This document shows positions 12,794-57,128 of a DNA stretch of 64,000 bases, piece after piece (the first letter of the stretch is position 1; the number at the start of each line of letters is the position of its first letter). The position numbers and the translations under genes are program-made. This DNA is from Takakia lepidozioides (Eukaryota; Plantae; Bryophyta), in contig CM060733.1 in the NCBI GenBank assembly GCA_030704615.1, positions 18,724,001 to 18,788,000 of the forward strand, in the 5' to 3' direction. The notes under the pieces were generated by a model that was not told the origin of the DNA, did no database searches, and saw only the letters and a list, made by a program, of their open reading frames with translations.

Positions 12794-13039
12794 TCAAAGA
12801 GGGGCTTTTAGGGTTTACAAAAAGGTTAAAAAACTTAAAAAGTTGCCCATCACGGTAGCGTGAACAGACTTAGAGCGAGCGGGAGGGAGAGAGAGAGAGG
12901 GTTGGGACTTAGAGCGAGCGAGCGGGAGAGAGGGCAAACATGCATGGGAGGCCCGCAGTTGGATCAACCTTCGCATTTGGAGCAAGCAACCCTAGAAACG
13001 CTACGGTATGTGTGCGAGGAGGTTTCGGCTGGGAGCCCG

Positions 13040-22161: not shown

Positions 22162-23757
22162 TTGTACCCAATGTCATTCTGAACACTGCCCTGGTGGACT
22201 GCATGTATGCCAAATGTGGGTGCATCGAGGATGCAAAGGAAGTGTTCGACAGTATGGCTGAACGAGATGTGGTGTCGTGGAGTGCGATGATTGCAGGATA
22301 TGCACAGCAAGGGCGCGGATGGAGGCTTTGGAGACCTATGAGCAATGATGCGGGAAGGGGTGATTCCCTGTGGAAAAATAGCTCCAAGAAACCTACATGG
22401 GTAGATGGTCAACTGGAAGCCGCAGCAGCAGTGGCACAATTGATAAAATCAGGCAATGCTAATCAAGGCACCTTCTTCAACACATTTCACTCTGTTTTCC
22501 CCTCTTATCAGAATCTCCCTAAATTTTCATGTTTTAAGAATTCTGCCACTATGCAACACGTGTCATATTTCACACCTTCGACAAGTCACTATGCAACACG
22601 TGTTCGTTCCTGTGTGGTGGTACGCATTAATTAATTATTAATTGATTTCCAATATTAAGTTTGAATATTAATGGATCTAATTTATTGTTATTATTATGAT
22701 GATTATTATTATTATTATAGGAAAAATGGACAATGGCCTTGATGAGAACATTATTAAATAACAAAATATTGAAATTATGTTTTTAGAAATTATATTTATT
22801 CGCTCAGATACCAAAACACACCCTTTGCAGGGAAGGAGAGTTTGCCTTAGTGTCTATGCTGAGTTGCGTCTCCTACTCTCTGTAATCTAATAGACATTCA
22901 CCTTTTTCCCTCGGTTGTCCCACCCTTGACTGGGATCAGAAAATCATTCATTCCACAACTTCTCCTCATCTCTGTTATATGTTTCTGGATACTTTCCTAT
23001 TGTCACTTTAGCAGTATCATGTCAAAATCACTCCAAACTATGTACCATCTACCCATGCAGGTTTCTTGTAGCTATCCTTCCACAGGGAATCATAAGTAAT
23101 CTAGAGCTTGAAATCTGGCCCACTTGGATGACACTCTATCCCTGCTCCTTCAACTATCCATGCCTCTGCACAGATCATGCATACATCCTTGCATTGTTGT
23201 TAGCAGCTGACAATGACAGCCTAGATTTGTTCCAACAAACACCCAACTCAACTTATGACACTAGTTCATATTCTCAATTGCATCTACCACTCTGTAATCC
23301 AAAGGCATTTACCTTCCAAGACGGTTGTCCCACCATTTACTGGGGTCAGAAAAGTATTCATTCCACAACTTCTCCTCTCTGTTACCTATTTCTGGATACT
23401 TTCCTATTGTCACTTTGGCAGTATTATGTCAAAGTCACTCCAACTATCAAAGGTTTACTCAACCAGTTCAAGGTGTGAAATCCGCCGTGAAACATGCCAC
23501 GCTAGCCTTTTTCACACTCTGCCATGTCAGCGGCCATGTCACCATGCACCCCGTGAAAAAAGCCACCCATGGAAAAAGCCTCCCGTGGAAAAAGCTACCC
23601 ATGGACTTTTCCACAGGGCCACCCGAGAGCCAGGCCGTCCACGGGGTGTCCGAAAGCACTAGTCGTTTCTTACACCCACGGCAGGTGTGGACTGCAGCTG
23701 ATTCCACAGCAAAAAGTGTGGAAAAAGCCGTGGAAAAAGCCGGTTTTTCTTCTAGTG
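22162..23757 (+). mobile_element. Right half of Pack-CACTA 2, ending in a right TIR
   Basis: PPR fragment 22162-22360; cargo shared with element 1 (22540-23460 inverted versus ~15900-16700); gtggaaaaagcc subterminal repeats; ends ..gccggtttttcttctagtg followed by AGG. Confidence 0.85.
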
Positions 23758-23789
23758 AGGGGAACACCTCTCCTTTTCTTCGCCTTCAT
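23758..23789 (-). pseudogene. Displaced 5' end (MKAKKRRGVP) of ParB-like gene B
   Basis: ATG at 23789 is in frame with EMDEDEE at 45021 downward when joined through one AGG. Confidence 0.8.
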
Positions 23790-23826
23790 TGAAATAGAAA
23801 AATTCTCCATGTAAAAGCAATGTCAC

Positions 23827-24525
23827 AAATTGAGTGCGTTGACGCACGCATTTCTGATGTCTCTACAGACTATGCATGTGCATTGTTTTTAGAAATGAGA
23901 GACCCATACGCAAGAGACCGTGCTTAAGTACTAACCCAAAGATTGCGTGCATCAACGCACATAATTTCGGTGGGTTCTCTGAAGTGTCTCTCGTGGATTT
24001 AAGACGATCTTCTTGTGCTCACACATTTGACCTTTCAGATCTGTTTAGAGCTCTGGATGTCCATAATAGCACCATCTGAAATTGAGTGCGTTGACGCACG
24101 CATTTCTGAAGCCTCTACAGACTGTACATCCTCTCTTCAACTTCAAGATACGCATGTGCATTGATCTCAAAAATGATAGACCGATACTCATGAGAATGTC
24201 CTTCAGAGAACCCATAGAAACTGCGTGCGTTAACGCACACAGTTTCGGAGGGTGCAATGAAGAGTTTCTCGTCAGATTTGTTTAGAGCTCTGCGTGTCCC
24301 TAAGAGCACCCTCCGAAATTGTGTGCGTTGACGCACGCAATTTCTGGGGTTTCTTTTAGGGACATTCAGAGATTTTTGTAGCTGATATCAGTAAACAAAT
24401 AATGCAGCCCATCTCCCTCTATTGATGGCTCCATTTAGAGATGCTAAGTGCAGAAAGTGGCTTTGAGAGCACCTCCAGAAACTGCGTGCGTTGACGCACG
24501 CAATTTTCAGGAGGTGCTCTCAAAG
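23827..24525. promoter_or_regulatory. Six ~26-bp quasi-palindromes (AATTGCGTGCGTTGACGCACGCAATT) between divergent gene B and the transposase
   Basis: Copies at ~23827, 23942, 24079, 24217, 24315, 24478; the last lies in a ~66-bp hairpin (24460-24525); a seventh copy at ~43245. Function is inferred. Confidence 0.7.
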
Positions 24526-24570
24526 GCCCTGCTATGTAGCCCACGTTGATGTCTGTCACTCCACTCTGAA

Positions 24571-27109
24571 GTGGAAAAAGACCTGGCAACGCGTTTTGAG
24601 TACCAGATTGGCACTGTTTTCCTCGAAAAAGAGGTCTACGATGTGCATGGGAAGTTGATCAAGTACTCATTTCAGAAACCGGATGATAATTCTCTTGTGA
24701 GTCAGTGGAGAGTGCCTCCAGGAAGATACAGGGTCGTCGGAGCTCCTCGGCGGCAGTCCAGTGGTTCGTATGCCCTGGGAACAGCTGGTTCTGTTGCTCA
24801 AGAGAAAAGGAATATCGTCGTGAAGACGGAGACCACTACTTCCACCCCAATAGTTGAGCTCTCGGACTCCTCCTCCGAGTACATTCCCAACATCCCAATT
24901 TATGTGCAAACACCGCCTGTCGTCAAACCGGAAGTGACACACCTCATCAGTGTCATTCCTAAACTGAAGTCAATGGGAGGAATGCCCGGTTTCCAGAGTG
25001 AATTGCGGGGGATTGACTGGGAGACAGTCCCTATTGAGTGTGTGGAGTTCCTGCCGAATGCTTATGATGGGGATGTCGTCTTCGAGCTACCTCCACCTGG
25101 GCAGGATGGACCCGTCACTAGCCTCATGCAGGGAATGGACAAGAGAGGAGATGGACACCCGTGGTGCAGAACGAAGACATCCAATATTCAAAATCATGAC
25201 AACCTCGTCTTCCGGAGAAGCCTGTGCAATGGGCACCTCATGTGCGAGAATTTGAATTGTAGGCATTTCCAACGGTTGAAGGTTCACAACCAGTGCAAGT
25301 GGGAGGGTGTCGCCAAAAATCCATTCAAACCCGGTGAGGCACCTCCAAGTTCCAACACTTTCGTTTGCAAGTTCTGCAAACAAACGTCTTCCTGTCTGGC
25401 AGTGTGTGCAGCACGCAAGTACTATGTTGTTCACCGTTTGAAAAACATGACTAGAGCCTGTGTACATTTCGGATTCCACAACCATCATGTGGTGAAGGGG
25501 GATTGCAGGGAGAGTGTTCAAACAGTGTCCAAGTTGATAAGACAGGAGTATGAGAGCAATCCAACAGCCACCACCTCCGCAATTGTGCTTGGAGCAAGCA
25601 AGAGTTTCTTGGAAAGCCATATTCTGAGTGTAGGGGACTCTGTGGGCAGGAAGCTGGACGGGCATGCCTTGGACAATGTTATGGATCACTTCTCAACCTT
25701 GAACTCACCGAACATTAGAAACCAGGTGAATGCATCGAGGATGGGCTATGCAAACAGAGGGTATATTGATAACATTTTGGAATTGAAATCTCGGAGCATG
25801 TACGACTATATTCAAGACAGCGTGTTCCCAGGTCAAGGATCCAACAAAGTGTACAATTTCAAAATGTCGACAACAGGGGAGGGCAGCGGAGTGAGCCTTG
25901 TCAAGCGCATCCAAAAAGATGGCGATCTGCAGAACTGTTTCCTTATGTTTGATCACGTCAAACGAATGAAAGACTGGACAACAATGGCGTGCCATGTTTA
26001 CGATCCTTTCTACCAGCGAGTCATGTCTATTGCAGTGTGTGACATGCAATCGGAGGATGCGGAGTCGCAGCAGCTTATGTGGAGATGTCTCATTCGCGTG
26101 ATGACATCCCATGGTGTCCCATCCCCAAATTTCACTGGTTTTATGGCCGATAGTGCTCAAGCAAATTTCAATGCTGTTCGCATTGTGTTCGGCTCAGGAG
26201 ATCCAAAAGTACCAATGCTAGGAAGCGAGCGAACATGTCTTTTCCATTGGACGCAATCCCTTGAGAAACATACCAAGGCAGACATCACACCAGACATGCG
26301 GGCGATTCATCTTAAACTATGCAAACAGTACAAAGATGCCAAAAGCATGGCGGAGGCGAATACTTTATTCCAGTCGATTCGTGCCTGGTGGTTCTCATCT
26401 GGGGCTGTATCAGAAGACAGTATGAGAGCGTTGGAAGACTGGCTAGCATTTTGGCACTTCCGGTACAGACAATGGGGAGCATGCATGACAACGGTACCTG
26501 AATTTCAGATCATGTATTCTCATTGGCTTTGTATGCATTTCCAATCATGCCTGCTGTCATGGGGTGTACCTGTCTGTCCTGATGTGTGTTTTCCCTTTTC
26601 TGCAGCACTTGTCAATTGAGGAGATGGCGGACATGCCCTCTTGCAATCTAGCGGAGACAGTGCACAATGCATGGTTGCAGTAGTCTGGAAAGCGGGGGCG
26701 GGATTTGTATCTGGCGACAGCAGATGATCTCATCCGAGCTCTGCAGCAACAAACGAGATATCGCGATTTCTTGAGGGGTGGCGTTGGTGGCAAAGGCCCT
26801 GACAAGTGTGAGTTGATGTTGCGAGCTGCAAAAAGATCGGGGGATCCAAACAAGATTGCCAGAGCTATCAGCATGTGTGCGGAGGGAACTCCTCTGGTGT
26901 CCAGAGTTCCCCATCTGGAGGGCGAGGAGAGATTCGGGTCCTGTAAACGGAAATTGAACACCTCTCCTGGGTCGGATGCAGACTCGCACAGGGCGGACAG
27001 GGACAACTTCTCCATTCCACGTGTTCCATTACATGAGAGGTTCGTCTCTAGTGGCACTCTAGAACTTCCTGAAGTGGAAGCACTTGCACGCACAGAGGCT
27101 TCTCGCTGA
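24571..27109 (+). pseudogene. GCM-domain / MULE-type DDE transposase with one intron and one nonsense codon
   Basis: DGHPW..C.GHLMC.N..C..C..C..H.GFHNH (GCM/WRKY-like); FDHVKR, FMADSAQAN, CLFHW (CxxH); phase-0 intron 26494-26605; then PSCNLAETVHN (catalytic E); TAG at 26681. Confidence 0.8.
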
Positions 27110-27580
27110 AGGGAGAACCCTGCCTCCTCCAACATTGCAATCTCTTGACTTGTGAGATGTGTCCCTACCTTGACTGGCCAAACGGTCGGTGGAGGAGGCT
27201 TCATGACCACTGATGGTCGCACGGTCCCACGCATGCACCTACCACAGTCGTCAGCGCGGAACCGGAATTTATGGTTTTTCGCCTCTGGCTGCCCATAAGG
27301 CTGGAACAAACCGTTGAAGGTCTGTGCTGGAGTGCAGGCACTGCCTCTGGATATGAAGGACTTGCACTTCTCACGATTGGTGGCTCTGATTGCGGAGCAC
27401 TTCATTCGAGACCCAGCTCTCGTGCGTTCTATATGCCACACTTCGTCGGAGCAGGTGGATTCCACCACAGGCGAGAGCAAGTTCGACTCATTGAGAGTGG
27501 GAGATGTTGGCGTACTTTGTGAGAAACGTTGCTCCGCACTGGAATCTGGACTAAAGTTTGGTCCAGAAATAAGGAGAAAT
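27060..27580 (-). pseudogene. Cys-containing domain (WHI.R..C..C..DDC.RC..WPVKVGT.LT..E...L..AGF) convergent with the transposase
   Basis: First ~140 aa of ORF 26557-27480 look like real coding sequence; the rest is antisense shadow of the transposase. Confidence 0.5.
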
Positions 27581-27795
27581 ATCTGAATATGTATTTTTTA
27601 AATCATTTAAATGAATTTAAATGGATCATTTTAAATATAAATATAAATATATAAATAATTGTTTGTCTATTAATATATAATATGAGCAATAAAGAAACAT
27701 TATGTATAAACTTCAGGAGAAAAAGCAGTTTATATTTGGCTCATAAAGCAAGTTCCATTGTTCACTCGACGTTTAGTAAGAGTTGAATGAGATAC

Positions 27796-28015
27796 CAACA
27801 GTCAGTAGCTCAGTTGGTGAAGTGCACTGAGTGCCACCAAGATGATGATGGGGTCAAATCTTGCTACTGACGAGTGTGGATGTTCCTGGGTGGTGTCCCA
27901 TTCCAACGCCACATGGCGGGGTTACTGTGAAAGAGGTTATACTATTAAGGGGGCCTGATTTGCGAGCTGTCGTTCCCAGGTGTTTCCATTACATTAAAAA
28001 AAAAAAAAAAAAAAA
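27796..28015 (+). mobile_element. tRNA-derived SINE, copy 1
   Basis: A box tagctcagttgg, B-box-like ggtcaaatc, 20-nt poly(A); homologous to 49981-50210. Confidence 0.85.
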
Positions 28016-28379
28016 CGGGTGTCGGGTGATAACTCGTCTCATGATCTGCGGCCTGATGGATGATTGGAGCACCAGTCATATTCGTAACCGCGACTGAGAT
28101 TACAAAGGCCGTTACTATGTAACGTACAAGACAAATCAATCAAATATGTAAGCAAAACATGGCACAATGACACAATACCATGAAATGAAATGAAAGACAA
28201 TGGGGAGACATTGATGATAAACAACCAGGTTTTATTTCAGAACCATGTCAATTTGAGTAAGTCTCGCCCCATGCGGCATAGACCAATACAAGTAACGTAA
28301 ACCATGTCAATGAGAGTATCAACTTCTAGAAGGAGGGTTGAACTCCGTTAGCACAAGACGATGTCGGCCGACGTACTTA

Positions 28380-29600
28380 TGATGAGAATATTTTGAGGAA
28401 AGTCATTTCCCAAAATCACGATATTTTGACAAGGTTGGAGGGACCATTTTCAAATCTGTATTCTTCCGTTGTTCCGAAGGTTGATGGAAGAAGTACATGA
28501 AATGTTGTCTCGAGAATCGTTGATATGGTGATGACCTCACAAAAAATATCCTCCAATATTACGCCAACCAACAATGTCTTGTGCGACTGAAGTTCAGCTG
28601 TACTTCTCGAAGAATTGGTGGTCTTGCAGACTTTCAGTGAATTGCGAAGATGATGAATTATTCGTATGCTCTTCAAAACATAATGTCCAAGTAACTGACC
28701 CTGGAGTAAGATGCTGAAAATATCCAATTGGGAAGTAAGTATGTTGCTTGTATGCTTCTAGAGAGTGGCTCGGTGGCGAATACGTTGATGGAGAGAGTGA
28801 CGTTTTCAGCAAAATCTTCAAGGAAATAGTGTCGGGTGACCAGTCGAGGTTCATCTGTGACGGGCTGTGGTACTTCTGACAATTTACTGTAAAGCACTCA
28901 TAAACTGATCACCAACTAAATAATCTCTAACTGACTAACCACCACATAACTTATTGGAGCTGTCACAAACAATGTCAAAAATCCTATTTACTGCTAGGTA
29001 TTTGATGCTATTGTTGTTCCTGTAGCTGAATTGTATAACAATCGTTTTGCTATTTCCATGCGACGGTATCAGATCCCCAGAGACTGTCATATTCAGACTC
29101 CCGTATCAGCCACGGCCCACCATCATTGACCAATATAAAACCATCAGCTGCATGTCAGCTGACAACCAGATCTTCGATTCATTGTATGCGACTCCAGAGA
29201 AACACCCTAGCCCACAAGTAGTTGGCCAGCAGCTTGAGATATTTCTCCGGGCTGTGATTGAATGAACTGGAGATTTCATTCTTAGCTGATGGTTTCATGT
29301 AGGTGGTGCCTGATTCCAATTTCGGAATATGGCAGTCTCAGTGGACCTGATATTGTTGGAATGGGAATAGCAAAAAGACTCCTATAGAAATCAGCTACAT
29401 GAACATACGTAATATCAAGCACCTTGAAGTACATATGATTGTTGAGATTGTTTGCACAGATTGTTAGCGACGGTGTTCCTCCTTTGGCGTCCAGTCCACA
29501 TGAAAATGACGAGAATGTTGCTGGAGATTGACGTTCAATTGCTGACATTCTGCCTCCTCGTAACACCATTTTGGTATGCAATGATGGACATCAGAACAGG
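28380..29600 (-). pseudogene. Degenerate multi-exon coding sequence of unknown family (gene C)
   Basis: Run of overlapping minus-strand ORF fragments with plausible splice sites; no recognised motif. Confidence 0.35.
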
Positions 29601-29616
29601 TCAGCTCTTAGAAAAG

Positions 29617-32600
29617 CACGCGTGATCGCGCGATGTTAATCGTTGCTGTTCCTCAAAAGAATAATGGATCTCCAAACGAAGGATATAGGAACCAAATAAA
29701 ACACAAAGAGGATGCTGTCAATTGTTGGAGATCGGATTATGCAAGCAGGGAGAAAGACTTCAAACAACTTAAAGACTAGGATTATAAGATACTTGAACAA
29801 TCCGCCAGGGAACAAGTGACACCATCAGCCTCGATGATTTGAGTGCGTGTTCTAAAACAAATCAATGAATCATCCAGGATGATGGTGTGAAATATTCCGG
29901 GACGGATTATCCGAATACCTTGAGTTCCCTCGTTGTAACTGACATGAAGTAACTCCCTATGCCTGCAGAATCATCACATCTTCAAATGACAACATTTTCG
30001 TTGTTGAATTCGTGAGCATAGAAAAAACATCACTCCGACCAATCACATGTGGCATTGTTGAGGTAATATAACACTTTGGCAGTCGGCTGGAGAACCATGA
30101 CGATGCTGAAGTCCGCTTTTCGAACCACGAGTGATCGCGCGACAGATCTCTGCCTCTACCACCATTGAGAACCATAACAAGCCGAGTGCATCCAGATTTC
30201 AATCAACCACAATGGTGCCATCAGTTGGACAGGGAAGGAATTTCGAAGCTGCCAAAATTACTTCAATCCATTTGAAGAGAGATTTTAACAAAGCTTCACA
30301 ATCCGGTCAGGAACAAATGAGACGACCATCGTGGGAGCTTGAATTACGAGATAGGAACCCGAATTCAGTCATAGACGATGATCATGTCACTTGTTCCCCT
30401 TCGTAATATGAAAACATCGGAAAATTTCTTCTCCTCCAACCTCCTCCAGCCTCCAGCCTCCAGCCTCCAGCCTGATCTGTTATTGCTTAAACTGACAATG
30501 AAGTCAACTTGTTTTGATACATATGATGGCACTGCTGATCCATGATAGCTCCACAAGAGGATATATGAAGGAACCACGCGCGATCACGCGTGATTTCTCT
30601 CAAACTTCGATGACTAACATTACAGCCGAAAGAATCTGGCATAACATTGACAGAGTTAAATAACGTATGTGTGTAATGAACAGGCCGGCCATAGTTTAAT
30701 TCATCAATAACACAGAGTTGCTTCCCAAACGGCTCACACTCAACACATATGTTCGAGATCGCCGTTGGTTACCACTGATGGCGGAATTCTGTGCACCCGA
30801 GGAGATGGATACAGTGGGAGATTGATGTAAGATATGACCAGACACCTCACCGGTAGCTGTACTTGATGACCTTGACAAATGTAAAGCCTCACAGTCCCTT
30901 CGCTCAGCCTTATGCTGCCGTTTCTCTTTCTTCTCCTGTCGAATTTGATTGTGAACTTGACACTGGAATATAACTGTGTGGAGGCAGCACAGAAGGGAAT
31001 TGTTAAAGAAAATACAAAGATCATTGAAATATCATTGATCTCACAAAAGTCATGTGAAGTCAACAAACGAAAAAGTACAAATGCAGGTTGAAGTAAAGCT
31101 GATGGACTACACACAAAATAGAGCAATAATAAACTACGTACCCAGATAATCGGGATCTTTTTGAGGGGGGTGCCAAACAGAAGCATCAATAAATCTTCCA
31201 AACCAGGACCAGTAGACGTGATTTCGACCTATCGGAGGGCAGGAAGATTTGCAGGAGTTCTTGCCGACGTAATCAACAACAGACTGGGCTCCAATCAAGC
31301 CCGAGAGAAAAGGCCACAAAGCTTTGGTGAGGTCAACCAAATCCTCCAAATTGCTTAATTCCTTGAATGTGATGGGGAAGACTGCAGTATTCACTGGGTT
31401 CCGGAGTGCCTTGGAAGGGTCATCGTCGACCAGTAGAATTTGCCCCTACCTAGCAAAGTCTTTCCCACTAAATTTTACGAGAATACTCTTAATACCTTTA
31501 ATAAGATATTTCATTCCAGGCTTAATATGTCCAACTGTATATGTGCAATGCTCGGCAGACCATATGAAACGAGATTGTTTCATAATTTCCGGAGAAACGA
31601 AACACCCCAACATCTTGAATACAGTATCCCTCTCAGAGCAAGACCAAATCGCTACATGAAAATGAGTCAATGCAAGTCGAAGAAACTCCAGCACTCCAGG
31701 TCTTGGAACTACAAACGGTCTTGCGGGCACCCGAATTGTTACTTTCCTCAAGTGGAACCTCTATTTAAACAACTCACCTCCGGTAGGAGGTGGCCTGTAG
31801 CAAAGAAGTCCATTGACACTCAGTACCAGCAACATGCGTTTGTGTTTCCGGACACCACACATTTCTTGAGTAACAACGTTCTGAACCATCCAAAAGAGCC
31901 CATTAGTTTCTGTTATCTGACCCAGAAATTAGGCATTTCCAATACATTTTGCAACTCAAAAAATGCCATGACATACTCGTTTTGTGGTTTACCTCGTTTC
32001 TATACCCTGATTTTCAAATGGAATATTTTGCTAAGGTAATATTTTCAGCATTACGACATTGAATTGAGACAAAAAATCACACTCGGGAGTCTCTAAGTTT
32101 CCTGCAACCACGCGCGATCGCGCGAGGTTACTTTGTGAAAGTTGTGTCGACAATGTAAATGATATATGTAATGATTACTAAGAAGCCATAACCAATAAGA
32201 CAGAGGACCAAGTGAAGGAGATACTTATTACCTTTGCTAGATTTACCATCCGATTCTGAGGCGGGTTACCACTGGAGGCAGGTGAATGTTGAAGGGATAA
32301 CAGAACGCCAGATGCTGTTTTTTCATCGTCGGACACGACCGACTGTTGTGATCTGCGACGTTTCCTTGACACAGGACCATCCGGAATTCGGGGGGGTTGG
32401 GGATGTGCAGAAATATTTGCCGGTCTTGTCGGTGTGCTGACCTCAGTCGGCGAATGAGTGAGTTCAATAACCTTCTCGCTGACGGTTGGCAATGGAATTC
32501 GGTTTCTTTCTTTATGCATATCCTGAACCGAATTCAAACGGAAAAAAAAATGATTACCTTGGAATACAACCCCACAGAAGTTGCCGCTTCATAGGAAGGT

Positions 32601-35600: not shown

Positions 35601-38600
35601 TGGTTTAATGGGGGTTGAACATCAGCACTCCCTGCAGGTGCTCCTCATGGTTCTCAATCTGGGCAGCCGTAGCAGGAAATACGTAATCAAGGCACATGAG
35701 AGGCATTGAAAATGGCTTTGGCCGGTTCATGTAAGGATTGTCGAACTCTCCAGGAAGATACAACCCCTGAAGCAGAATATATTTGTCCCGCCCCTCGTCA
35801 AACCTTATGTTCGAGACGAGATTGGAAGAGGACCTCTACGTCGAGAAGAAAACAAATACATTGGGGCTCAGCTGCTGTTCGAAGAACGCATCAAAAATAT
35901 TCTTGTAATTTCTTTGCATGAAAATAGTCGAGTCAGCGTCACAGACTGTGTTGACGAACACCATTGCGATGTTATCGAAATCCCTCTTTCTCACAATTTT
36001 CAACTATGTTTTGGCATCCGTGAACCTCCGCTTCCCTCCAATGCACTAGTAATGTGACTTGAATGTATCCTTGAGGTTGCCCATTTCCTTCTCCATGTCT
36101 TCAACCCTTTTCTTGCATGAAAGCACGTATTTGATGAAAGCGTCACTCACTTTCTCGGTCTTCATGTTCATGTTCACTTTGTTTTTCATGTATTTGGCCC
36201 CCAGTTTCGATCGGAATGTCTCGAACTCCGACTTGTTGAACTTGTACCTTTTCTTCACTTCGAGCCATTCTGCTTTTGTGTACGGTTCTGGATGTTGCTT
36301 GCTCCTGGCATCATATCCCAATGCCACCATAACATCATCGATAATAAACCGCATGTCGGTTATTCGATCGATGTAATCGGACAGGCAGAGAATCTTGGGG
36401 TCCCCGGTCTTTTCCTTTGTAAGGACCACGAACGCAGATCTTCAAGTCCAAAATCTTTTGCGCAACCTTCTTCATTTGAAGGGGGTTCAATCCCTGGAGT
36501 TTGCAAACTGCAGATTTTGTTAGCTGCGATTGTACACCTTTATGCTTCTTTCCGTTAATGTCCAAGAGGTTCCCCTTCTCCCACTCTCTGAAAACCTCCT
36601 GCCACTTCTCCCAAACATCGTCATCGCAAAGGGCCAAGGTCATGGCCTCCTTAACGCTAAGCATCTCCAATATAAGTTGTGAGGCTTGCAAAAATTCCTG
36701 GTCAACAGGAACAACATGTCAGGCCAACACACAACAGGGACAAACAGTTCTACTGAATGAACAACAAAACATTAAACAATAAAGGAAGTCCGAATAATTA
36801 CCTTCCACTGAACGGTTTCAGATTTGGAAACGTTATCGTTGAATTTCCTGGGCTTCTCTTTCAACTCATAGTACATCCTTGCGTCGGGATGTTTCGTATC
36901 TAGAACCCACAACTGGTACAGACGGGCTTTGACTTCATCTTTGTGATTAATATTCAGCGGACGATATACCATGCTTCTTGGAGCAAGTTCCATCCTTGAG
37001 ATGTCAATTGAGATTATGTGGTTGAACCCAAAAGGGAACATGTCTTTGTAGTCATTCTGCAGACTTTGATTCATCGCCTCGCATTTCTTCTTGTCAAAAA
37101 TCTCGCCAGGTTTTGGCTTCTTGTTGTCATTCATAAATACAATATCGAACTCTTCTTTCTTTTTCTTTTTGCCGGCTGGCTGCTCCTCTTCATTCTCAAT
37201 CTGAGAGGATCCTGCCGTGGACTTCCGTTTCCCTTTACCCTTTGCCCCCTTTGCTGCCTCATCGTCTCGTTGTTTTCTGTTATGTTTCCCTGTGCATGGA
37301 GTACATCTTGGAAAATGCTCCAAGCTCGTACGAATCCCTGAGCAGTCAGGGCTGCACCACCTTCAGGGAAAGTGAATCCCATCTTTACAGCTGGTTTCCA
37401 TTGCCTTGCGAACGCGACGAGATTACAAAGAAAAGCCAAACGTCTTCTTCGCTCTACCATCCTCCAATATGAAAACCACCATCATTGGATTCTACACGTC
37501 GGACTCCATCTCAACATCTTTAACGTAGCCATAATTAAGCTCCTTCACCTCCGCTCCAATCTTGAAGGAAAACTTCAGTTGGTGGTTAGGAGGTACACCC
37601 ACATGATTTATTCCCCACTCGGATATCGCCTGGTTAAGAGTATACAAAGCTACGTGGTCTATGCTGAAGTTTGGCGATTTTGGTGAGATGAACTCCCCAC
37701 ATATCTCCTTGCATACGCCAACCAAGCAATCCGCCGGTATATTTGACTGACGACTGAACATGAAGCACAACATTATGTTATCTGGATTAGATATCTCATG
37801 GCATTATTTCAGGATTGAGAGTAAAGGCCGAAGATTGAGACAAATCATAATGTTACGGATGTCAGGCCAATATACAAATGGGAATCCCACTGGGAAGATA
37901 TGGAATTGAAAGAAACTAACATACAATTAAGCTGGAATAGGGGACATTCAATTGTGACTGCAATATGGAATAAATGGAATGGACTAAATCAATGTTACAA
38001 TTGAACTGGAAATCTGAAAAGCTGCAGATCATTATATTGGTTTCAAAAATCGTGAAGAATACTTTATCATTCAACAGTGAAGAACAAAAACGGAGACATC
38101 GTTGACGTTTAAATGTACAATCATATATGTCTGCCTAAAACTGAGATGAAGGACTATATCATGGTGATTCAGGACACCCCCAGAAAGTGATCCTACTGAT
38201 TATTGTGGGTATTCGATGGAACCACGTTGAAATTCTGAACTGGTTCAAGTACACTCCTGAGAGCCCGTGAAGAATCAATCTATTTTTGATGATGCCGAAT
38301 GGTCGGAACATATAGTTGACGTAGGTGTGTACTGTGCCAAAAATGAGGCCAATGCAGCCGACTTGGGTCTGAGGTGGCTAAAGTATCCTATTGGTGAGTA
38401 TTCTGGGGATCCCGGAGTATACCCTGGTGATGAGGGTGTATACTTTGGGGATGCCGGAGTGTACTCTGGGGTTGAGGGAGTGTACTCTGGGGTTGAGGGG
38501 TTGATTCCGCCGATACTTCAGCTACAGGATCTTCGGAAGACCCTCCACAATATTGTTCTAGAAAAGAACTTAAAGCTGCTGACCCGGGAGGAACGTCGCA

Positions 38601-41600
38601 AAAATATCCTATTGGTGAATAACTGTCATGATCGTCTGATTCAGGGGAGTAGGTGTCAGGCTCCTCTGTGGATGGAATTGTAGAAACTGGAGATGATATA
38701 ACATGATCTCCTTCGGAAGGTCCCGTCATAATAACCGCAGCTCCGCATTCACCTTGTGAGGAGGGTGAAAGCGTTGCCTTGTGTGCGGTATGTTCCATCT
38801 CCTTCTCCTCCTTCATCGAACACGAATCCACCACACTGGAAGAATCATCAAGAACTCGTGCTCAGATACAGAATGTACAGAAAGAGACACTCGAAGAACG
38901 CGCGATCGCGCGTATTTGGTCCACAATTTTCCCTCCATTAACGTAAAATCCGATTATAAGCAACAACGATGTTGCTAAGCATGGCGAACAAAATCCATAT
39001 ACATGACTTTGTTCTTTCAGTCATATAAGAGTATCCTGACATCTATTATCCCAAGAAAATTCTTCTGAGCTGTAGCAACATTAGAATCGCGCGCGATCGC
39101 GCGTTATTGAGTTGATGACACCACACAGATGAACTAATTTCATCCCACTGCGAGAAGTCTAGTGGAAGGACTATTAAAGTACATTGAGAACATTGAGGAT
39201 TATCTAGCTGGAAGTCGTTTTTATTATATTTAGAATAAGACTGAAACGAAGAAGTCAAATACGCACTGTTGCGCAAAGTTCAATAATTGCATAATCCTTA
39301 AAATTGCAAACTATGAGTTTACTGTCGTACTAATGAATGATTTCTTCGACCACTTACAGTTTTCTTAGACATCACATCTTCACTGTCCAATTCGAATGAG
39401 TGCTCGATATAATCGATGAACAACCTAAACGATGTTGACGACAAGTATTATGTCAAAGTGCCCTGGACTTTTGGATTGATATTTGGATACTATAGTATAC
39501 TATTGTGTCCACACTGCACACCTCCGCCCATCATAAATAAGAGTGACAAAGCCACCACATATAGGAATTATCATACTCTGTGTGCATGGCAAGACAGATA
39601 AACTGCGACGGAAGATTTTAGTTGACATTATATAATGTGAACTAATGTCTTCCGAAACACTTTACGATTTTGAGTATGCACTCAGACATATCCTCATATG
39701 TGTCATCTAATCATCTGGGTATCAATGGTGTTGTTGTGGTCGATAGAATATAAGTACCAACCAATTGAAGCACGCGCGATTGCGTGTGCTTCTTCAGGGC
39801 ATTCTTGGGCATCACATCTTCAATTTCTCAACGAATGCAGTTCACTACTGAGTCAAATTCGCGCGATTGCACAACGATCAATTATTGCATAATCCTTTTA
39901 ATTGAAAACAATGAGTTTATTGTCCTACTAATGAATGATTTCTTCGACCCAGTTGGGTATTACCTATTGTTGGTTAGTGCTCCTGTAGGTGACGACTTTT
40001 ACTGAATGAAGCACGGGCGATCGCGCGTGCTTCGTTCAGATCATTCCCTTGATGAAAGTGCTTATTGGCCTTGCTCCAAGTCCTAACTAAACCATGTTCC
40101 GCAATACTATAACTGAAATAAACACAGGCGATCGCGCGAGGTTTCTCTACGGCTTACAAAATCACTAGGAATCCCTACTTCGAGAGGCACGTAATGCAGA
40201 TCATGGAAATAATGTGCATAACTGAATCGAGCTAAAATCATAGTTTGGTATCCAGACCTGTACATCGTAAAATGATTTCACGCGCGATCGCGCGTGAATG
40301 GACTATGTCATGGTACCTATAATGAGGCCTACACCCTAGGATGCAAACCCTAAACAGTTGCCAGCTGTACCTACGAACCCTATGTAATCGGAATTTCTCA
40401 TGTCTCGAATCCGGAGTCGTTCCTCAAGGAAAGCATACATATCCCGAAATCTTCTACAATTCCCAATCCTTCTATCGACCATCCTACCTCTTTAACTCTG
40501 GAATCAATCCAAAAATCAAAACAGACAATCAAAACAATCAAAACAAGCAAACAATCAAGCATGCAATTTCTACCTTCCTGCAATTTCTGCAGCCCACAGA
40601 AGAATCCCTCACTGCATGCATATGTGGGTAACGAGAAAAACTTTACCTGCTTGATGCCATTTCAGGCAAGGATCCTCCCTGCAGGGTTGGGTGAGCTCTC
40701 TCGCTCGGGTGCGCACAACAGCTTCCGGGATAGCGTAGTCTGTTGTTTTGCCCTCCTTTCACTCTGTCACACTCCCCCACACACACTGAATTGCTCAAAC
40801 CCACACTCACTCCAACTCATGCTCCCTCGATCTCTCACTCTCTCGCTTACTTGATCTCCACCTCTCTGCCTCTCTCGCTCAGCCGCTCTCTCTCGCACCT
40901 CTTCCTTGAGTCCAAAATTGAACAGGGCTTCCGCGTGTATCAAATGAATGCAAAAGGAGACTCTTTGTGGTCACTCCTCCTTATATGCCTTACCACCTGT
41001 GATCTCAACCGTCGGCGTTATGTCACATCCTACGGTTTGTGGCCTCGATGCATGGATGAATGTAAGGCGGGATGTTTCCCAACAATTCGTTGACGACCCC
41101 TAAATTTATGATGGTACAATCAATGATGTGACATGACTGTCAGTAATGAATGGACTCCACTAGTTTGTCCAGAGCGTTACGGCGCGGCAATCCGACGTCT
41201 TCCATAAAGTGAACACCCTGGAATTATTGCGGGTTCCCGTGACGGCGCTCATCCATGAGGGGAGTTGAATCATCCACTAGGGCAGTCATCTCATCCAGTA
41301 TACGTCTGTTTCATCCGCGAAGACTCTTATTTCATCCAATGATAAAATATTATCATAGGTTCAATAATGAGGTGTCGGGACGTGCATCTGGGATTTGATC
41401 GGTCTCACGTTTTCTCTACCTACACTTCATCTACGGCCCCATGTTCATTGCGGCTACTTAATGTCACCTTGCCATAGATGGCCGCCGGCTCATCACAATG
41501 GCCTTAAGAGGCGGCCACTTTCGTCGCCGACTATTCCTTCTCTTGTATCATTAATTCAACATTGGGTTTGTTGCTTCTCTGGTGCTTTGGATGTCAGATT

Positions 41601-42523
41601 CCAGATCTCGAATCAGTTAGTTATTCGCATTGGCCGCAATAACTTATGGACCCATTAATGTTCGGAGGATTTCAGACTCCAACTTGAATTTATGCTCTGG
41701 AGGACACATAATAGCCACTAGATTACACGAAAGAGCATATCCAGTGCGACAATTTGTCGATCTATGACACTCCAAACGCACCTCTGTAATGTGAACATGT
41801 CGACCTCGTACTGTTTGACAATCCGTATAAGAGCCTGCCCTGTGCACGCATGCCATTTTTTCCCTCTCAGTTGCTCTGGCTCGTTGATCTTCAGGACTGT
41901 CTGTTTTACGTTCATTCTTCCCTTTGTACTCGTTTCAATATTGAGAGCCTCTCCACTTCAACTGGGTTTCTCTTCTGTCTCTCTGTTCCTTTGTTCCCAT
42001 CCACTATCTGCAAAGATCTTACATACACACCCGACCGTTTTATGTACTTCGAATGACCACTTGCACTACAGCTGTTTCGTTCATCCATGTTTCATCCATT
42101 TGCTGACTTGTCATCCAAAAGTCGTCTACCATTATTCATCCGTCCTTCATTTCATCCATATGAACCACGCACGACCGTCGATGTGGTTCTATTTCTGTTA
42201 TAGAGTCGTAGACAATATTGTGCATTCGAGTCGTAGCTTTAGCAGATCCTTTAAGTTTCTACAAATTTTTGTTTCGACCAATAGAGACCTACGTTCTACA
42301 TTCTAGTAGACAATCCGAGAGTCTGAGTTCTATTTTCAATATCCAAATCATTATAACCCTAAACGCGGGCGATCACGCGAGGTTCCTTTTCATCTTCATC
42401 CTCAGTTTTTCTAAACAAACTTCAGTAACTTATTGTTTCACTCTTTCTTAGTGTCCATCGATATAGTGCCGAATCATTAATCACCAGAATCTCTATTGTA
42501 GGATACACGCGCGATCATGCGAG
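29617..42523. repeat. About 14 dispersed copies of palindrome CACGCGCGATCGCGCGTG
   Basis: At ~29617, 30126, 30575, 32109, 33187, 38898, 39089, 39767, 39860, 40002, 40123, 40277 (perfect 22 bp), 42363, 42506. Confidence 0.9.
30730..38834 (-). pseudogene. Gene A: multi-exon gene with partial ParB-like region, methyltransferase-like remnant and three FCP1/NIF-like HAD domains
   Basis: IDISRMELAP..YRPLNINH; ELRAE..SLFCGEG.AAVNVFGG; HAD repeats VLDVGF..ILWNT..TLLID, IIFDINGVL..GIWSC..TLLIDD..NP, LVLSVNGLL..RPGVLEFL..VAIWSC..LLVDDDP.K...NP; linked by short GT-AG introns; several stops. Confidence 0.6.
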
Positions 42524-45025
42524 GTTCGTGGAAATGTCGTTGTTCCAAACTGGTCAACCATCATGGCAAGGAATGAGTCGTTTACAAGCTCGCATCTGCA
42601 TTCTTGGTTGATTCGGGATGGGTGTTCCACTGCGTCGTATGGCTCAAACTTCCCCTTGCGTTTGCGATCCTTGGTTGCAATTGGGGTCTGGGAACCAACA
42701 CCTACTACAACATCCCCTTGGGCGCTCTTCTCCTTCCCTTTGTCCTTTGTGCCCTTTCCCTTCCCCTTCCCTCTCGTCGGAGTGTGTGTGGCTGCAGGTT
42801 TCTTCTCAACGAGGTTTCGTAGGTTTCTGTCATGCAGTTCCCTGTCTGTTAGAGGAGCCAAGGACTCGGCATTGTCGTTCTGGTTCTGTGTCTGCAACTC
42901 ATACCATGGGCAATCTGATTTTGGTATGTCGAGCCAGCAGCAGTCTTTGAGGTGATATGTACCGTAATCCCTGAGGATTGCTGCAGTGTACATGGTGTGG
43001 CTGTTGGAGGAGTCAGCCCACAAGTCGATGAAGCCTGGGTACTTGCTTAGGTTGTTCCCAGGAATCAAAACGTTCTTGATATACCTACAAAACAATGTAG
43101 GCACAGTATCAGAAAGTGGATGAGAAACTACATGATTTGTGGCCAGAACTGATAATATGAAAAACCAGATAGGGAACGGGTCTCCAAGAAACGAACCTGC
43201 ATTCAATGAGACATAGGGAAAATAGTCTAGAGATCCAACCCTCCAAAATGTGTGCGTTGACGCACTCAATTGTGGAGGGCCATAAAGGAAGAATGTGATC
43301 CTGCTTAGTTCAAATGACCCACCTGTACAGGACCCTTTTCATGGCTCCCTCGGATCCAAACTGCTGCTTGAACTCTTTTGTCCGGGATATGCCCCCCTCC
43401 TTGGCGAACTCTCTGAGGAAACAGTTACTCCACGCTGTCGCCTTCCACTGTCTCAAGTAATCCTCCATAGTATCTTCGGGCAAGGTCATCGTTATCTTGT
43501 AAGCATGTAGCTGCTTCTCCAGCACCTGGTTTGCACGAGCTTCAATCTGTGAACAGACAGAATACAAACGTTAAAGTCCATACTAGGGAAGATTCTTTTG
43601 TAAATTCAACATATGGCAGTCCACAACATTACCTGGCTCCAGTACGTGGCTTTGTGCAGCCAGGTATCGAAAACTTGATCGCTGAATGGCCTGATGTGGC
43701 CAGTATTTTCGTCTCTTTCCCCCCTTGGGAAGCAATATGTGTCCTTCACTGTTGAGTCAGAATTCCAAATCTCCAACCATTTAACTTTCTGCTCGGAATC
43801 CACCACTGCAGTTGACAAACGATGCAGCTTTTCCTGTGTCATCTCTGGCTTCGTATTGTTGTTCTAGTGGTTCCTCACCTCATTCAAGAATTGAGGCCCA
43901 AAGGCAAGGTCTGCCATTCTCAGCTGTTTCACAAAGGCGCTCATGATCTTCTTCCGAGTCTCATTCATCTTTAACTTCATTGCTTCAGCCACTCCTTTCG
44001 ATGTTCTTATCCCCTCGAGGGTTTTGAAGTAGTACTCTATTTTGGCCCTCTCCCCAGCCTCCGCTATCTCTTGCTGCAAAAACCAATCCAAAATCAGATA
44101 GAAGAATAATTTGAATTGTACTAGAATATGGAAGTGCTAGGTGATGATATACTAACCGTGTATATGTATTCCATGAATGCTCCCCTTGTCAGCTTGTACC
44201 ATGTGTCCGAAGTTTTGGAGGTCCGGCATTTCGCGAAGGTTTCTGGACTGAGGATGCTCTTGAATGTGTTGAGGGGCATTTGGCCAATATTCTGGATCCT
44301 GAACAGGGTGTGTACCAGGTTTGTTGTAACATGGGCGGTTTCAGTTCCCCTACCACAAGCAGTGGTATGTCATGACATGTCCGATTTGACTCCCAAACAC
44401 ATGAGGGAAAGAACCGAGTTATTTCAGGAAAGACACTTACTTGTTCACGTCATGCATTGCTGTCAAGAGCGCAGTGATGTTTCCCTTGGGATCCAGCACC
44501 ATGGAGGCCACACAATAGTGCCACTCCTCCTCAGTGCTATGATACCTCGATATCATGTTCTGCCAGGCTAGCAATCGGTGGTTGTCATCCCAGACATGGA
44601 ACATCTTGCCTGAGAAAGCCTGTGTAACAAGCCTCTTGCAAATGCTTGATTCAAACTCCTCGTTGATACGTCGCCAAATTGGATCCCAGCCTCCAACAAT
44701 GGTCTCGTCTACTAAAACTTCCCTGCCATTGGCGTCGCCCAACGAGACGTAAAACACAGACTGACCCTCTATGTAGCCATGGCAAAAATCCTGTTCTAGC
44801 TTTGCAATGTCATTCGTGAGTGTTGGTCGGACGAACGGCATGGAGATCAACCTGCACAGTGGGATCATTAATTTACCCCCAGGAACGCCCATGGCCTTGA
44901 TGACTTGGGCAGAGTTCACTTTCGAGAACGACAACAGATCTTTTGCCCTGTCCTGGTATGGCCTGCCATCGTCTTCCTCCTCTACAACAACAAGTTCGTG
45001 CTCTTCGTCTTCATCCATCTCCAGG
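42493..45025 (-). pseudogene. Gene B body: ParB/sulfiredoxin-like N-terminal domain protein, multi-exon
   Basis: IPLCRL...VRPTL.NDIAKL...F..GY...FYVS...FHVWDDNHRLLAW (one transition from DGNHR); introns at ~44440-44353, 44157-44075, 43610-43550, 43320-43085. Confidence 0.65.
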
Positions 45026-47072
45026 CACTAGAAGAGAAACCGGCTTTTTCCACGGCTCTGCCATCTCACACCTGACACATTCCATGGCTTTTACCACAGG
45101 TCTGTAGAGTGAGCCAAGGTGTGGGTCAAAATATGCCCTAACTGTGGGGTGTCTCATATGTGATCCACACCCGAGGCAAGAACGGTGTGAAAACAGCCAT
45201 GAGTGTGGCGGGAGTTGGCTTAGTTTACATGGCATGTTACACACATGTGTGAAATGGGACCATAGAATTTCCACATTGTGGTGTATGGGGAGTTTGAGAA
45301 TGATGCCCTTGGAAAATGATTATGAACTTCATGTTCATGTTTAGAAATCTGCACGATGGGCTACTAGCAAGTGAAGAATCACCCCCTGCTACACCCCATT
45401 TTCAATCTCTACATTATGAAGTCTATAATGCCCTTGGTGAAATGAGCATGGGGATCGCATTCAAAGGTGGCCCCGTTCCGTTGCAACCTATGACACAACT
45501 AGGACAAATAGGCATAGGCATGATTTACACTTTTTGCCACAAAATCACTTGCATCATCCTTACGTTGAACTCCTTGTTTCTGTGACATGCTTGGACTTTG
45601 TCATCTCACACATCAAGGAAAAAACCAGAATATTTCGAAAAAATCCTAATCTAAATTTACTGACAAGTGTTCAAACCAGCCCAATGATAATCTATTTTAT
45701 TACCATTATCAAATGTTTGTCTACGTGGTGTTTTGGTTTTCTAGACAAGTCTGGTAGCAGGATTTTAGCCTCTGACCTAGAATGAATCAAAGTGCAAAAG
45801 GTTAAAAAGTCAAAAAGTTGCTAATAAGGTTGCCCATTAGGGTAATCGTGAACACAGAGGAGGGCTAGGACTTGGCGTTTTTTTTTGTCTCATGCGCCAC
45901 ACCATGTAGCCGAGGGATGGAACGCGATGATTGCAGGATATGCAGGGGCGTGGGATGGAGGCGTTGAGCAAATGATGTAGGAAGGATGAGATGAGGATGA
46001 GATAAGACGAGGAGAAGCTCGCAACATTCTTGCGAGCTCGCCGTTCTTGGGAGAGTTAGCTTGGTCTTAGCAGGCCGTGTTTCAATCTCTGCCTACTCAG
46101 CTGCACCGTGGTAGACCAATCCGACATTACCTGATTATAGACACAAGCAGCACACACAAGAGGTCCATTTGGGTTGATGCTCGGTCAAGTCATGACACAA
46201 GCTCAAGGACAATGTGGTGAGGGCACCTTCTTCTTTGACCTATTTCAGCCTGTTTTGCCCTCTCACATCATGTTTGTGTGCATTGCAATGCTTGTGCAAG
46301 CCTGGCAGCCCTTGAGAAGGGCAAAGAGGTGCATGGGGATATCATCAAAGCTGGAATTGTACCTAATGTCATTCTAAACACTGCCCTGGCAGCTCTAGAA
46401 AAGGGGAAGGAGGTCCGTGGTGACATCTTCAGAGCTGGAATCGTACCAAATGTCATTTTGAACAATACCCTAGTGGACATGTATGCAAAATGTGGGTGCA
46501 TCGAGGATGCAAAGGGAGTGTTCAACACTATGGTTGAACGAGATGTGGTGTCGTGGAGTGCGATGCTTGCGAGGTATGCACAACAGGGACGTGGGATGGA
46601 GGCTTTGGAGACCTATGAGCAAATGATGGGGGAAGGGGTTCAGCCTGGCCACATCATGTTTGTATGCATTGCAGGCCTGGCAGCCCTGGAGAAGGGTAAA
46701 GAGGTGCATGGGGATATCATCAAAGCTGGAATTGTATCTAATGTCATTCGAAACACTGCCCTGGCAGCTCTGGAAAAGGGGAAGGAGGTCCATGGTGACA
46801 CCTTCAGAGCTGGAATTGTACCAAATGTCATTTTGAACAATACCCTAGTGGACATGTATGCAAAATGTGGGTGCATCGAGGATGCAAAGGGAGTGTTCAA
46901 CACTATGGCTGAACGAGATGTGGTGTTGTGGTGTGCGATGCTTGCAGGGTATGCACAACAGGGACGTGGGATGGAGGCTTTGGAGACCTATGAGCAAATG
47001 ATGGGGGAAGGGGTTCAGCCCGGCCACATCATGTTTGTGTGCATTGCAGGCCTGGCAGCCCTGATTTAAATC
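45026..47072 (+). mobile_element. Left half of Pack-CACTA 2, starting at a left TIR
   Basis: AGG|cactagaagagaaaccggctttttccacggc matches the reverse complement of 23727-23757 with one mismatch; cargo 45790-47063 collinear with element 1. Confidence 0.85.
46278..47069 (+). CDS. PLS-class PPR fragment ORF (263 aa) built from a ~375-bp tandem duplication
   Basis: Two copies of [44 protein letters not shown]; no transit peptide or E/DYW domain. Confidence 0.75.
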   Translation: MHCNACASLAALEKGKEVHGDIIKAGIVPNVILNTALAALEKGKEVRGDIFRAGIVPNVILNNTLVDMYAKCGCIEDAKGVFNTMVERDVVSWSAMLARYAQQGRGMEALETYEQMMGEGVQPGHIMFVCIAGLAALEKGKEVHGDIIKAGIVSNVIRNTALAALEKGKEVHGDTFRAGIVPNVILNNTLVDMYAKCGCIEDAKGVFNTMAERDVVLWCAMLAGYAQQGRGMEALETYEQMMGEGVQPGHIMFVCIAGLAALI

Positions 47073-47199
47073 AGGCACCTCAACCATGACCACAGTTTCT
47101 AAAAGAGGATCAAGAGAGGGAGTCCATAATGCCTCTTCTGGCTCTTCTGGGCACGTGAAGATGCTTTGTGAGGCAGGCAGACTGAAAGAGGCTGTTGGA

Positions 47200-47640
47200 T
47201 ATTGGCAGTATTTCCCTTTGTACCGAATCATAACCTCATCAACCGTCACCATCTCCTTCATATAACAGCCGGGTAATTAACAAAAACTTTTATAGTACCC
47301 CAACCACCTCAATCCTATGGTCAACCCCTCTTAGTGGTGGCAGGCTGCTCGGTAAATCTTGCTCACAATTTACGGACATTATAAAGTGGCTTCTAGGCAA
47401 GCCCATGTCTAGGCCACCCTAGTCCGAGACTTCATTGTCTTTGGCGCTGTATACACATTGGTCTCTACATATTCGGACTAGCACGTGTGGCCTCCAAAAC
47501 AATATTTGAAAAAAAAAAGGTTGTGTAGCCAAACATTTGAGGTGAGTTACCCTAGACATAGGGCCATTGAATGCGTTTCGATTGCTGCAAAATGTGGTAT
47601 CCCCAAGTCCTAGGGCCAAACAATTTATCAAAAGATGGTG
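47200..47640 (-). pseudogene. piggyBac-like transposase remnant
   Basis: MVTVDEVMIRYKGKYC motif and upstream LFWRPHVLVRICRD..YSA segment. Confidence 0.6.
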
Positions 47641-48277
47641 AGACACAATTTTAACTAAATCTGAACTTTTGGCTTAAATCCGGATCAAACTTGATATACG
47701 ACAAAATTGAATTAATCAATAAATACTATTGAAAAATATCATCATTTAACTTAGAAACAAAGTCGAAGCTGTAAGGGCTTTGCCCACCAAAAATATATTG
47801 CAATAAAGTTAACCAGGGACCTCCCCTGTTAAAACCAAAAGAATAAAAAAGAATAAAAAATAAAAAAATCGAAGGGCTTAAAAAACTGTTGATTATTGAA
47901 ATTTTGTAGCAAGACTCTTAAGAAATTATCGTTATAGAAATTGGATGACATCTTAGTTGTAGTCAATTTAATTGTCAAGGGATTCATGATGCAATTGAGA
48001 TATCATTATATTTGTAACATGGTTGATGTTATAATTCGAGTCAAAACGTCAATATTGACAAGTTTGATCATTTGAATTGAAATTTCACCTAATTTGACAC
48101 TTAGCAATCAGGCTGCACATAATGATCATCACTTTATATTTCAGTTTAATAAAACGTTATCTCAATGTTGTTCTTGAAATTAATTATTAGCACCTGACTA
48201 TCTGTAACTCTTTTGTAGATAAAATTAATATTGTCAACACACAATTAGCAATGTTGTCGGACCTCTCCAGAGGGAAC

Positions 48278-49980: not shown

Positions 49981-50210
49981 TTTTTTTTCCGAAAAGGGAA
50001 ACACACCTGGGAACGACAGCTCACAAATCAGGCCTCCCTTTTTTTTTTGGCCCCTTAATAGTGAGAGGATAAAATAACCTCTTTCGGAGTAACCGTGCCA
50101 TAGAGGCGTAGAAATTGGACAGCAACCAACACCCGTCAAGTAGCAGGATTTGACCCCAGAATCATTTGGGTGGCACTCAATGCACTAACCGACTGAGCTA
50201 CTGACCGTTG
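49981..50210 (-). mobile_element. tRNA-derived SINE, copy 2
   Basis: Reverse-complement homolog of 27796-28015 with a T-run tail. Confidence 0.85.

Positions 50211-57043: not shown

Positions 57044-57128
<85 letters not shown>

Follow-up and report, generated by a model that had tools for sequence, protein, structure and literature searches.

A segment carrying a Mutator-like transposon between inside-out CACTA ends in Takakia lepidozioides, possibly circularly permuted

The window analysed here is a stretch of 64,000 nucleotides from Takakia lepidozioides (contig CM060733.1, positions 18,724,001 to 18,788,000), and all coordinates below are positions within it. It contains a 21.27-kb segment (23761-45022) that lies between two CACTA-type transposon ends and carries the two genes of a Mutator-like element, a transposase (ORF682) and a second gene that we refer to as gene B. 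Read on the + strand, the left junction of this segment runs ...CCGGTTTTTCTTCTAGTG (last base 23757), AGG (23758-23760), GGAACACC..., and the right junction runs ...CATCTCC, AGG (45023-45025), CACTAGAAGAGAAACCGG (first base 45026). The termini, CACTAGAAGAG... starting at 45026 and ...TTCTTCTAGTG up to 23757, are of the CACTA...TAGTG type, with a right end at 23757 and a left end at 45026. As inverted repeats, the two terminal inverted repeats (TIRs; 23726-23757 and 45026-45057) are identical at 31 of 32 positions, and they are the only copies of this sequence in the window when up to 3 mismatches are allowed (chance expectation 0.06). A subterminal 14-nt motif, CCGTGGAAAAAGCC, occurs five times within 23551-23742 (+) and twice within 45042-45099 (-) and nowhere else in the window. 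The trinucleotide AGG is a direct repeat present at both junctions, outside the inverted repeat and on the segment-facing side of each end; the probability that two random 3-mers from the window are equal is 0.017. Thus, the flanking ends are genuine CACTA-type ends that are mutually reversed and have a common 3-bp flank. Both CACTA elements run outward from the segment, which places their ends inside-out, and the AGG target site duplication (TSD) links ends that come from two separate or fractured elements and not both ends of one. A preliminary description of this DNA had already claimed inside-out CACTA ends with an inward-facing AGG duplication, and the terminal repeats and both junctions agree with it.

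The end on the left of the segment is the right end of one CACTA-type element (23448-23757, +) and comprises the TIR together with the cluster of subterminal motifs, although its inner limit at ~23448 is only the point at which similarity to a neighbouring repeat family stops. Similarly, the end on the right is the left end of another (45026-46030, +), again with the TIR and subterminal motifs, and its inner limit at ~46030 is only where similarity to a PPR-associated repeat begins. We found neither a left TIR in 1-23757 nor a right TIR in 45026-64000 (≤3 mismatches). A single element spanning both flanks would be >42.7 kb in length and would enclose the gene for the succinate dehydrogenase iron-sulfur subunit (SDHB; 60990-62877, -), which is intact in the right flank. 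Its two exons are separated by one intron of ~1 kb, exon 1 ends in ...LLQAHR at a CAG/GT donor, and the product has a mitochondrial presequence. Because the partner TIRs are missing from the window and SDHB is intact, the flanks do not form one element of at least 42.7 kb, and it is unlikely that both are the interior of one giant CACTA element. What the window retains of each CACTA element is therefore a single end set in host DNA. The right element is truncated, with no right end before SDHB, and the right flank is ordinary host DNA. No CACTA-type transposase domain (TnpD-like; Pfam Transposase_21/24) was present in the 12 of 14 flank open reading frames (ORFs) of ≥150 amino acids (aa) that were scanned; the ends are those of non-autonomous or truncated elements, a state that is compatible with membership in the CACTA superfamily. 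The CACTA terminal repeat also had no match in two scans of metagenome contigs. Overall, the ends resemble those of CACTA elements such as En/Spm in their CACTA...TAGTG termini, their 3-bp flanking repeat, and the opposite orientation of the subterminal repeats at the two ends. Unlike typical members, however, the elements in the window have one end each and no CACTA-type transposase nearby.

Within the segment, the first gene on the + strand is ORF682 (24571-26619), which is intact and, from its homologues and a fold model, probably encodes a Mutator/IS256-like DDE transposase with an N-terminal GCM/WRKY-type zinc finger. It is 40-54% identical to homologues of ~700 aa. Pfam gave no significant MULE, Transposase_mut or SWIM match for the ORF682 family, the only Transposase_mut match being a weak one (E = 0.18) in 1 of 20 family members. 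A model built from 20 homologues (pLDDT 71.8) was compared with known structures using Foldseek, and the best match was ISCth4 (probability 0.98-1.0, although E was only 3e-3 and the TM score low), together with a GCM domain (probability 0.96). ISCth4 is a member of the IS256 family, whose elements are bacterial relatives of Mutator. In related loci, the counterpart of ORF682 is followed by an ORF of ~460 aa, for which a weak SWIM match (E = 0.05) was obtained with the copy in locus L003. This second transposase ORF is broken in the window (26609-27477): residues 1-138 are encoded by 26609-27025 (+), a piece that includes an in-frame stop, residues ~165-290 lie on the - strand from 27477 down to ~27106, and the C-terminal third beyond residue ~305 is absent, a pattern best accounted for by a local inversion plus a deletion. 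At its breakpoint (27045-27065) is a filler, TCTCTAGTG-G-CACTCTAGAAC, that resembles a CACTA right terminus set against a left terminus. The window has one match to the pattern TCTAGTG.{0,3}CACT versus 0.16 expected, and the filler may have arisen by chance, may be a short palindrome that the inversion created, or may be left over from earlier CACTA activity. A sequence located 3' of the second transposase ORF in loci L001 and L002, CACTACAAGA, was considered as a conserved CACTA terminus and rejected as a coincidence, because the homology between these two loci fades gradually across that site.

Gene B occupies the other end of the segment on the - strand (42798-45018), with exon 1 at 44437-45018 and further exons at ~44145-44351, 43630-43875, and 42798-43083. 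Exon 1 encodes 193 aa from its own ATG at 45018 and was modelled with a pLDDT of 87.5. The Foldseek matches of this model were Noc, ParB, PadC, sulfiredoxin, and KorB, with probabilities of up to 1.0, though with E values of at least 0.012. Accordingly, the N-terminal domain of gene B is predicted to adopt a ParB/Srx fold with a GxxR-type motif, which here reads DGNHR. This motif is nearly invariant across the family, the N and H being invariant and the G and R conserved at ≥90%. Exact look-up of exon 1 returned no match, nor did a word-based homology search, and Pfam gave only a faint DndB match for gene B. An exhaustive HMMER search identified 524 relatives. The relatives of gene B that have names are from a liverwort, Riccia sorocarpa, and a fern, Adiantum nelumboides. 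Profile searches with the transposase and with gene B matched nothing in PDB or Pfam, and both were classified by fold comparison only. From the fold matches of ORF682 and gene B, the segment appears to hold a Mutator-like element with a ParB-like accessory gene, and one such element is present. Its likeness to Mutator-like elements such as MuDR (mudrA/mudrB) lies in the IS256-type best fold match, the GCM/WRKY zinc finger, and the presence of a second, non-transposase gene. A relative on contig_242 (ENA ERZ25039475) additionally has a 9-10-bp flanking repeat (TCTATGAAGA), albeit in an unusual geometry, and TIRs of ~80 bp, neither of which was found in the window. In contrast to those elements, the accessory gene has a ParB/Srx fold and the two genes diverge from a repeat-rich intergenic region.

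That divergent arrangement became evident from a comparison with six related loci fetched from other genomes, among them contig_242 (locus L003). In four of the relatives (L001, L002, copy 1 of L003, and L006), gene B (-) lies upstream of and divergent from the transposase (+), and copy 2 of L003 is co-linear with this order, although its contig ends before the transposase. The region between the two genes in these relatives is repeat-rich and 2.7-5.9 kb in length. The window likewise has one transposase and one gene B, except that they are convergent, 15 kb apart, and located at opposite ends of the segment. At the left edge of the segment, 74 bp (23761-23834) separate the first of a series of palindromes from the TSD beside the CACTA right end, and at the right edge the gene B ATG lies 4 bp from the AGG beside the left end. 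Joining the two edges through one AGG recreates the gene order of the family, with the gene B ATG ~0.8 kb from the transposase start. Because the join recreates this order, the two CACTA ends appear to mark complementary positions in one element, with no sequence lacking or repeated between them. In this comparison of loci, the family gene order appears to be a much stronger support for permutation than anything offered in the preliminary description.

The palindromes are consistent with the same arrangement. The core sequence TGCGTTGACGCA (≤1 mismatch) yields 8 matches at 7 sites in the window versus 0.14 expected. Six of these sites form a cluster of ~40-50-bp palindromes at 23835-24498, in the repeat-rich intergenic region upstream of the transposase, and the remaining one lies inside a gene B intron (43253-43264). 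The cluster corresponds to the tandem-repeat intergenic regions of the related elements. In L002, one 193-bp tandem-repeat family occurs both in the intergenic region and in the gene B intron (1261-2495 and 5018-7612), which parallels the window palindrome at 43253 and the cluster at 23.8-24.5 kb, and we count this parallel in favor of permutation. As previously suggested from the sequence, joining the segment ends does bring the single intron palindrome near the cluster, at a distance of ~1.85 kb.

The preliminary description also took the join to recreate the beginning of gene B. The arithmetic of the translation across the join, MKAKKRRGVPLEMDE, is correct, and the 74 bp next to the left junction, which in the joined arrangement would be the 5' flank of gene B, do contain an ATG on the - strand at 23789 (MKAKKRRGVP, 10 codons) and another in-frame ATG at 23810. 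However, gene B has its own ATG at 45018, encoding the M of LEMDE, and its homologues start alike: P0014, P0091, P0106, and P0006 all begin with M and an acidic run, as does the extant gene B ORF. Moreover, a local script found an in-frame upstream ATG before a stop in 32% of random joins. A basic patch such as MKAKKRRGVP was also considered as a conserved feature of the homologues, and we dropped it as evidence because their N-termini are unconserved and because of the 32% obtained with random joins. Thus, the proposal that this DNA passed through a circular state retains the reversed ends, the AGG, and the family order seen in four relatives, but loses the restored start.

We put the chances at about even that 23761-45022 is circularly permuted DNA whose permutation point was made by CACTA transposase chemistry. 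Both junctions would then stem from one integration at a single AGG, ~4 bp upstream of the gene B ATG, in a target that was circular. The topology, in which an element end and a duplication stand on either side of a target opened at the insertion point, is the outcome when two transposon ends still attached to the chromosome integrate jointly into a circular target, as reversed Ac/fAc ends do in maize. Two routes could produce it. In the first, reversed-ends transposition, two neighbouring CACTA elements would be cut, one at its right end and the other at its left, with both ends remaining attached to the chromosome, and these ends would insert together into a circle, linearising it between them. 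The circle could be the inter-transposon segment, circularised in the same reaction, or some other extrachromosomal circle. In the second, a small CACTA element would insert normally into the Mutator-like element, after which the region would circularise, the circle would break inside the CACTA element, and the product would re-join the chromosome with the same sequence outcome. Both routes would predict ordinary host flanks and no partner CACTA ends nearby. The most specific version, in which a CACTA transposase acted upon reversed ends of two neighbouring fractured elements and captured a circle with a whole Mutator-like transposon, is one that we advance tentatively and hold to be doubtful.

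A number of observations weigh against the permutation. The joined intergenic distance is 0.8 kb versus 2.7-5.9 kb in the relatives, and locus L007 has no gene B within 10 kb. The Mutator-like copy has itself been rearranged, as seen in the inversion, deletion, and stop codon of the second ORF, and therefore unrelated rearrangements could have moved gene B. No Mutator-like TIRs were found in the window, where the best inverted alignment was no better than those of shuffled sequences and the list of inverted repeats held only the palindromes and a possible miniature inverted-repeat transposable element (MITE) at 28966-29454. The uninterrupted junction, CATCTCC-AGG-GGAACACC, is likewise absent from the window, and neither an excision footprint nor a circle junction was identified inside the segment, in which the only visible internal breakpoints are at ~27.03-27.6 kb. 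Taken alone, the 3-bp AGG match has a probability of ~0.017, and the continuity of the ORF carries no weight. Two co-oriented copies close together, as on contig_242, would likewise place a gene B after a transposase. In the ~15-kb middle of the segment, the ORFs have no Pfam match, no homologues, and no counterparts in the related loci. Lastly, our literature search found no alternative transposition described for CACTA elements.

The first of the other explanations is coincidence, in which two independent truncated CACTA elements of the same family would happen to surround two Mutator-like halves, the right from one copy and the left from another, or one rearranged copy, and the shared AGG would be due to chance. 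A 3-bp match at p ~0.017 is not negligible, and the window copy is degenerate. Adjacent co-oriented Mutator-like copies do exist on contig_242, and the ORF continuity says nothing against this explanation either, as gene B has its own ATG and its relatives start alike. What makes it unlikely in our estimation is the conjunction of what it demands: both CACTA ends must have hit the same structural point, the boundary between the gene B start and the intergenic region, in two copies; two independent truncations must each have taken away exactly the outer CACTA end; and the 3-bp match is required in addition.

Alternatively, a CACTA element nested in the Mutator-like element could have been duplicated in tandem along with ~15 kb of neighbouring DNA, after which the outer parts were deleted. 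The window would then show the stretch between two CACTA copies, the outer CACTA halves and the outer gene copies having been lost. A repeat of CACTA plus segment would need no circle to yield these junctions and this permuted order, repeats and rearrangements are abundant in the region, and co-oriented Mutator-like copies 3.5 kb apart on contig_242 offer a precedent. Nevertheless, self-comparison of the window revealed no large duplication. The flanks have nothing in common with the segment except a short interspersed nuclear element (SINE), and the sequence common to both flanks is limited to PPR-related repeats and the TIR. Since the segment is not repeated in either flank and SDHB is intact, the window is not a simple tandem array; it also holds only one gene B and one transposase. 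If there had been no extra deletions, the CACTA element would have to be >42.7 kb and include the intact two-exon SDHB, whereas a history with deletions requires two additional events, both of which must break within a CACTA copy. We consider this history quite unlikely. An assembly artefact, in which reads of the repeated CACTA and Mutator-like families were wrongly joined, is very improbable even though both families are repeats, as one wrong repeat join does not give a 21-kb unique stretch bounded by matching TSDs, the segment would need to be tandem or circular in the reads, and the junction sequences are clean.

Returning to the permutation, its closest known counterpart is found in maize, where reversed-ends transposition of Ac/fAc circularises the inter-transposon segment and where permutations are listed among the Ac/Ds products (PMC1592236, PMC3744419). 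As in that system, two ends face each other across an inter-transposon segment, one TSD is common to different or fractured elements, the intervening DNA would have been in a circular state, and neither element needs its other end (fAc being fractured). The ends in the window differ from Ac/fAc, which are hAT elements with an 8-bp TSD, in being CACTA-type with a 3-bp TSD. Furthermore, the window holds an old, fixed structure read from one sequence, as opposed to a product recovered from a known progenitor. In the soma of Arabidopsis met1 plants, VANDAL21 (Mutator superfamily) undergoes alternative transposition, and the excised spacer has been detected as a circle (PMC12312487). The window shares with VANDAL21 and with the hybrid element insertion of P elements the joint use of termini from two neighbouring elements; it differs in superfamily and in that those cases involve somatic rearrangement and loss of the spacer circle and not its permuted re-capture.

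Bacterial cointegrates and the inverse (inside-out) transposition mediated by insertion sequences have the same topology of end, TSD, opened circular target, TSD, and end. Those bacterial cases arise by replicative transposition or from composite transposons on plasmids, whereas eukaryotic CACTA elements move by cut-and-paste. Unlike in cointegrates, no two complete element copies flank the segment in the window.

Deletions, inversions, duplications, and permutations are all proven products of alternative transposition. Nearly all of the work on it has concerned the hAT elements Ac/Ds and Tam3, P elements, and, more recently, VANDAL21, and it is documented in each of these (PMC12312487). If the reversed-ends explanation is true, the window would be the first natural evidence of such transposition in the CACTA superfamily, and the mechanism would then reach a further major superfamily of plant transposons as well as non-seed plants. 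Another implication would be that a circle that is normally lost can be taken up again, with an entire foreign transposon and 15 kb of DNA moving in a single step. If tandem duplication or coincidence is the true explanation, the locus would be an ordinary region of nested transposons.

The Mutator-like family itself is uncatalogued, with transposase ORFs of ~700 and ~460 aa that lack a Pfam match and an accessory gene of the ParB/Srx type (DGNHR). Its members are spread widely across contigs from ENA, JGI, and Logan, and some relatives have methyltransferase annotations or domains. The element on contig_242 is ~11.6 kb in length with TIRs of ~80 bp that are 77% identical. This contig (L003/L004/L005) has two 99%-identical, co-oriented copies separated by 3.5 kb, located in L003 at 2290-13909 and from 17426 onwards, and the spacer between them contains an F-box/Kelch gene. 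At the TIR boundaries, the 9-10-bp sequence TCTATGAAGA is found both to the right of copy 1 and to the left of copy 2, whereas a different sequence, GATAAAAACA, flanks copy 1 on its left. When 20-nt sequences from contig_242 were paired at random, a shared word of ≥9 nt occurred in 280 of 200,000 pairs. The geometry of this duplication is inside-out, as at the CACTA ends of the window, which hints that circle capture recurs in non-seed plants.

Between the broken second ORF and gene B, the segment includes several further repeats. Its middle (29619-42521) has 12 copies of a second palindrome, CGCGCGATCGCGCG (≤2 mismatches), often in the form aaCCACGCGCGATCGCGCGaGGTT; there are none elsewhere in the 64 kb (0 expected). 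This DNA may belong to the element in this lineage only, or it may have travelled with the element. The tRNA-derived SINE of the segment (27794-28015, +), which has a poly-A tail, is a later insertion, and a related inverted copy, 71-79% identical, is present in the right flank (49981-50212, -). The possible MITE consists of two 94-nt arms (28966-29059 and 29361-29454) that are 77% complementary and separated by a 301-nt spacer.

By its content, the window is nuclear land-plant DNA, most likely from a non-seed plant and not human. Outside the segment, it contains PLS-type PPR sequences with a 105-nt period, the reverse transcriptase of a long interspersed nuclear element (LINE), and fragments of long terminal repeat (LTR) retrotransposons. 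Degenerate PLS-class PPR fragments, together with an associated upstream repeat and a ~420-bp repeat, are found at 13030-16556, 22162-23447, and 46031-47069. The ~420-bp repeat at 15.4-16.6 kb is inverted relative to that at 22.7-23.4 kb, and a 375-bp tandem duplication, 95% identical, is located at 46295-47063. The repeats common to 13-16.5, 22-23.4, and 46-47 kb were considered as CACTA subterminal repeats and rejected, since they are the 35-aa PPR coding repeats and an associated repeat family; they reveal no hidden element ends. Treating 23448-46030 as one insertion into a PPR gene was likewise unconfirmed, as the two flanks are not adjacent in the paralogous PPR region. The PPR fragments could be host pseudogenes or gene pieces carried by the CACTA family, and the CACTA interior may resemble Pack-CACTA elements in carrying PPR gene fragments. 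The left flank also includes the LINE, with its reverse transcriptase and a possible endonuclease ORF upstream, and LTR-retrotransposon pieces encoding RNase H and zinc-knuckle gag-like ORFs, at 17034-19148, 3262-4110, and 9140-11421.

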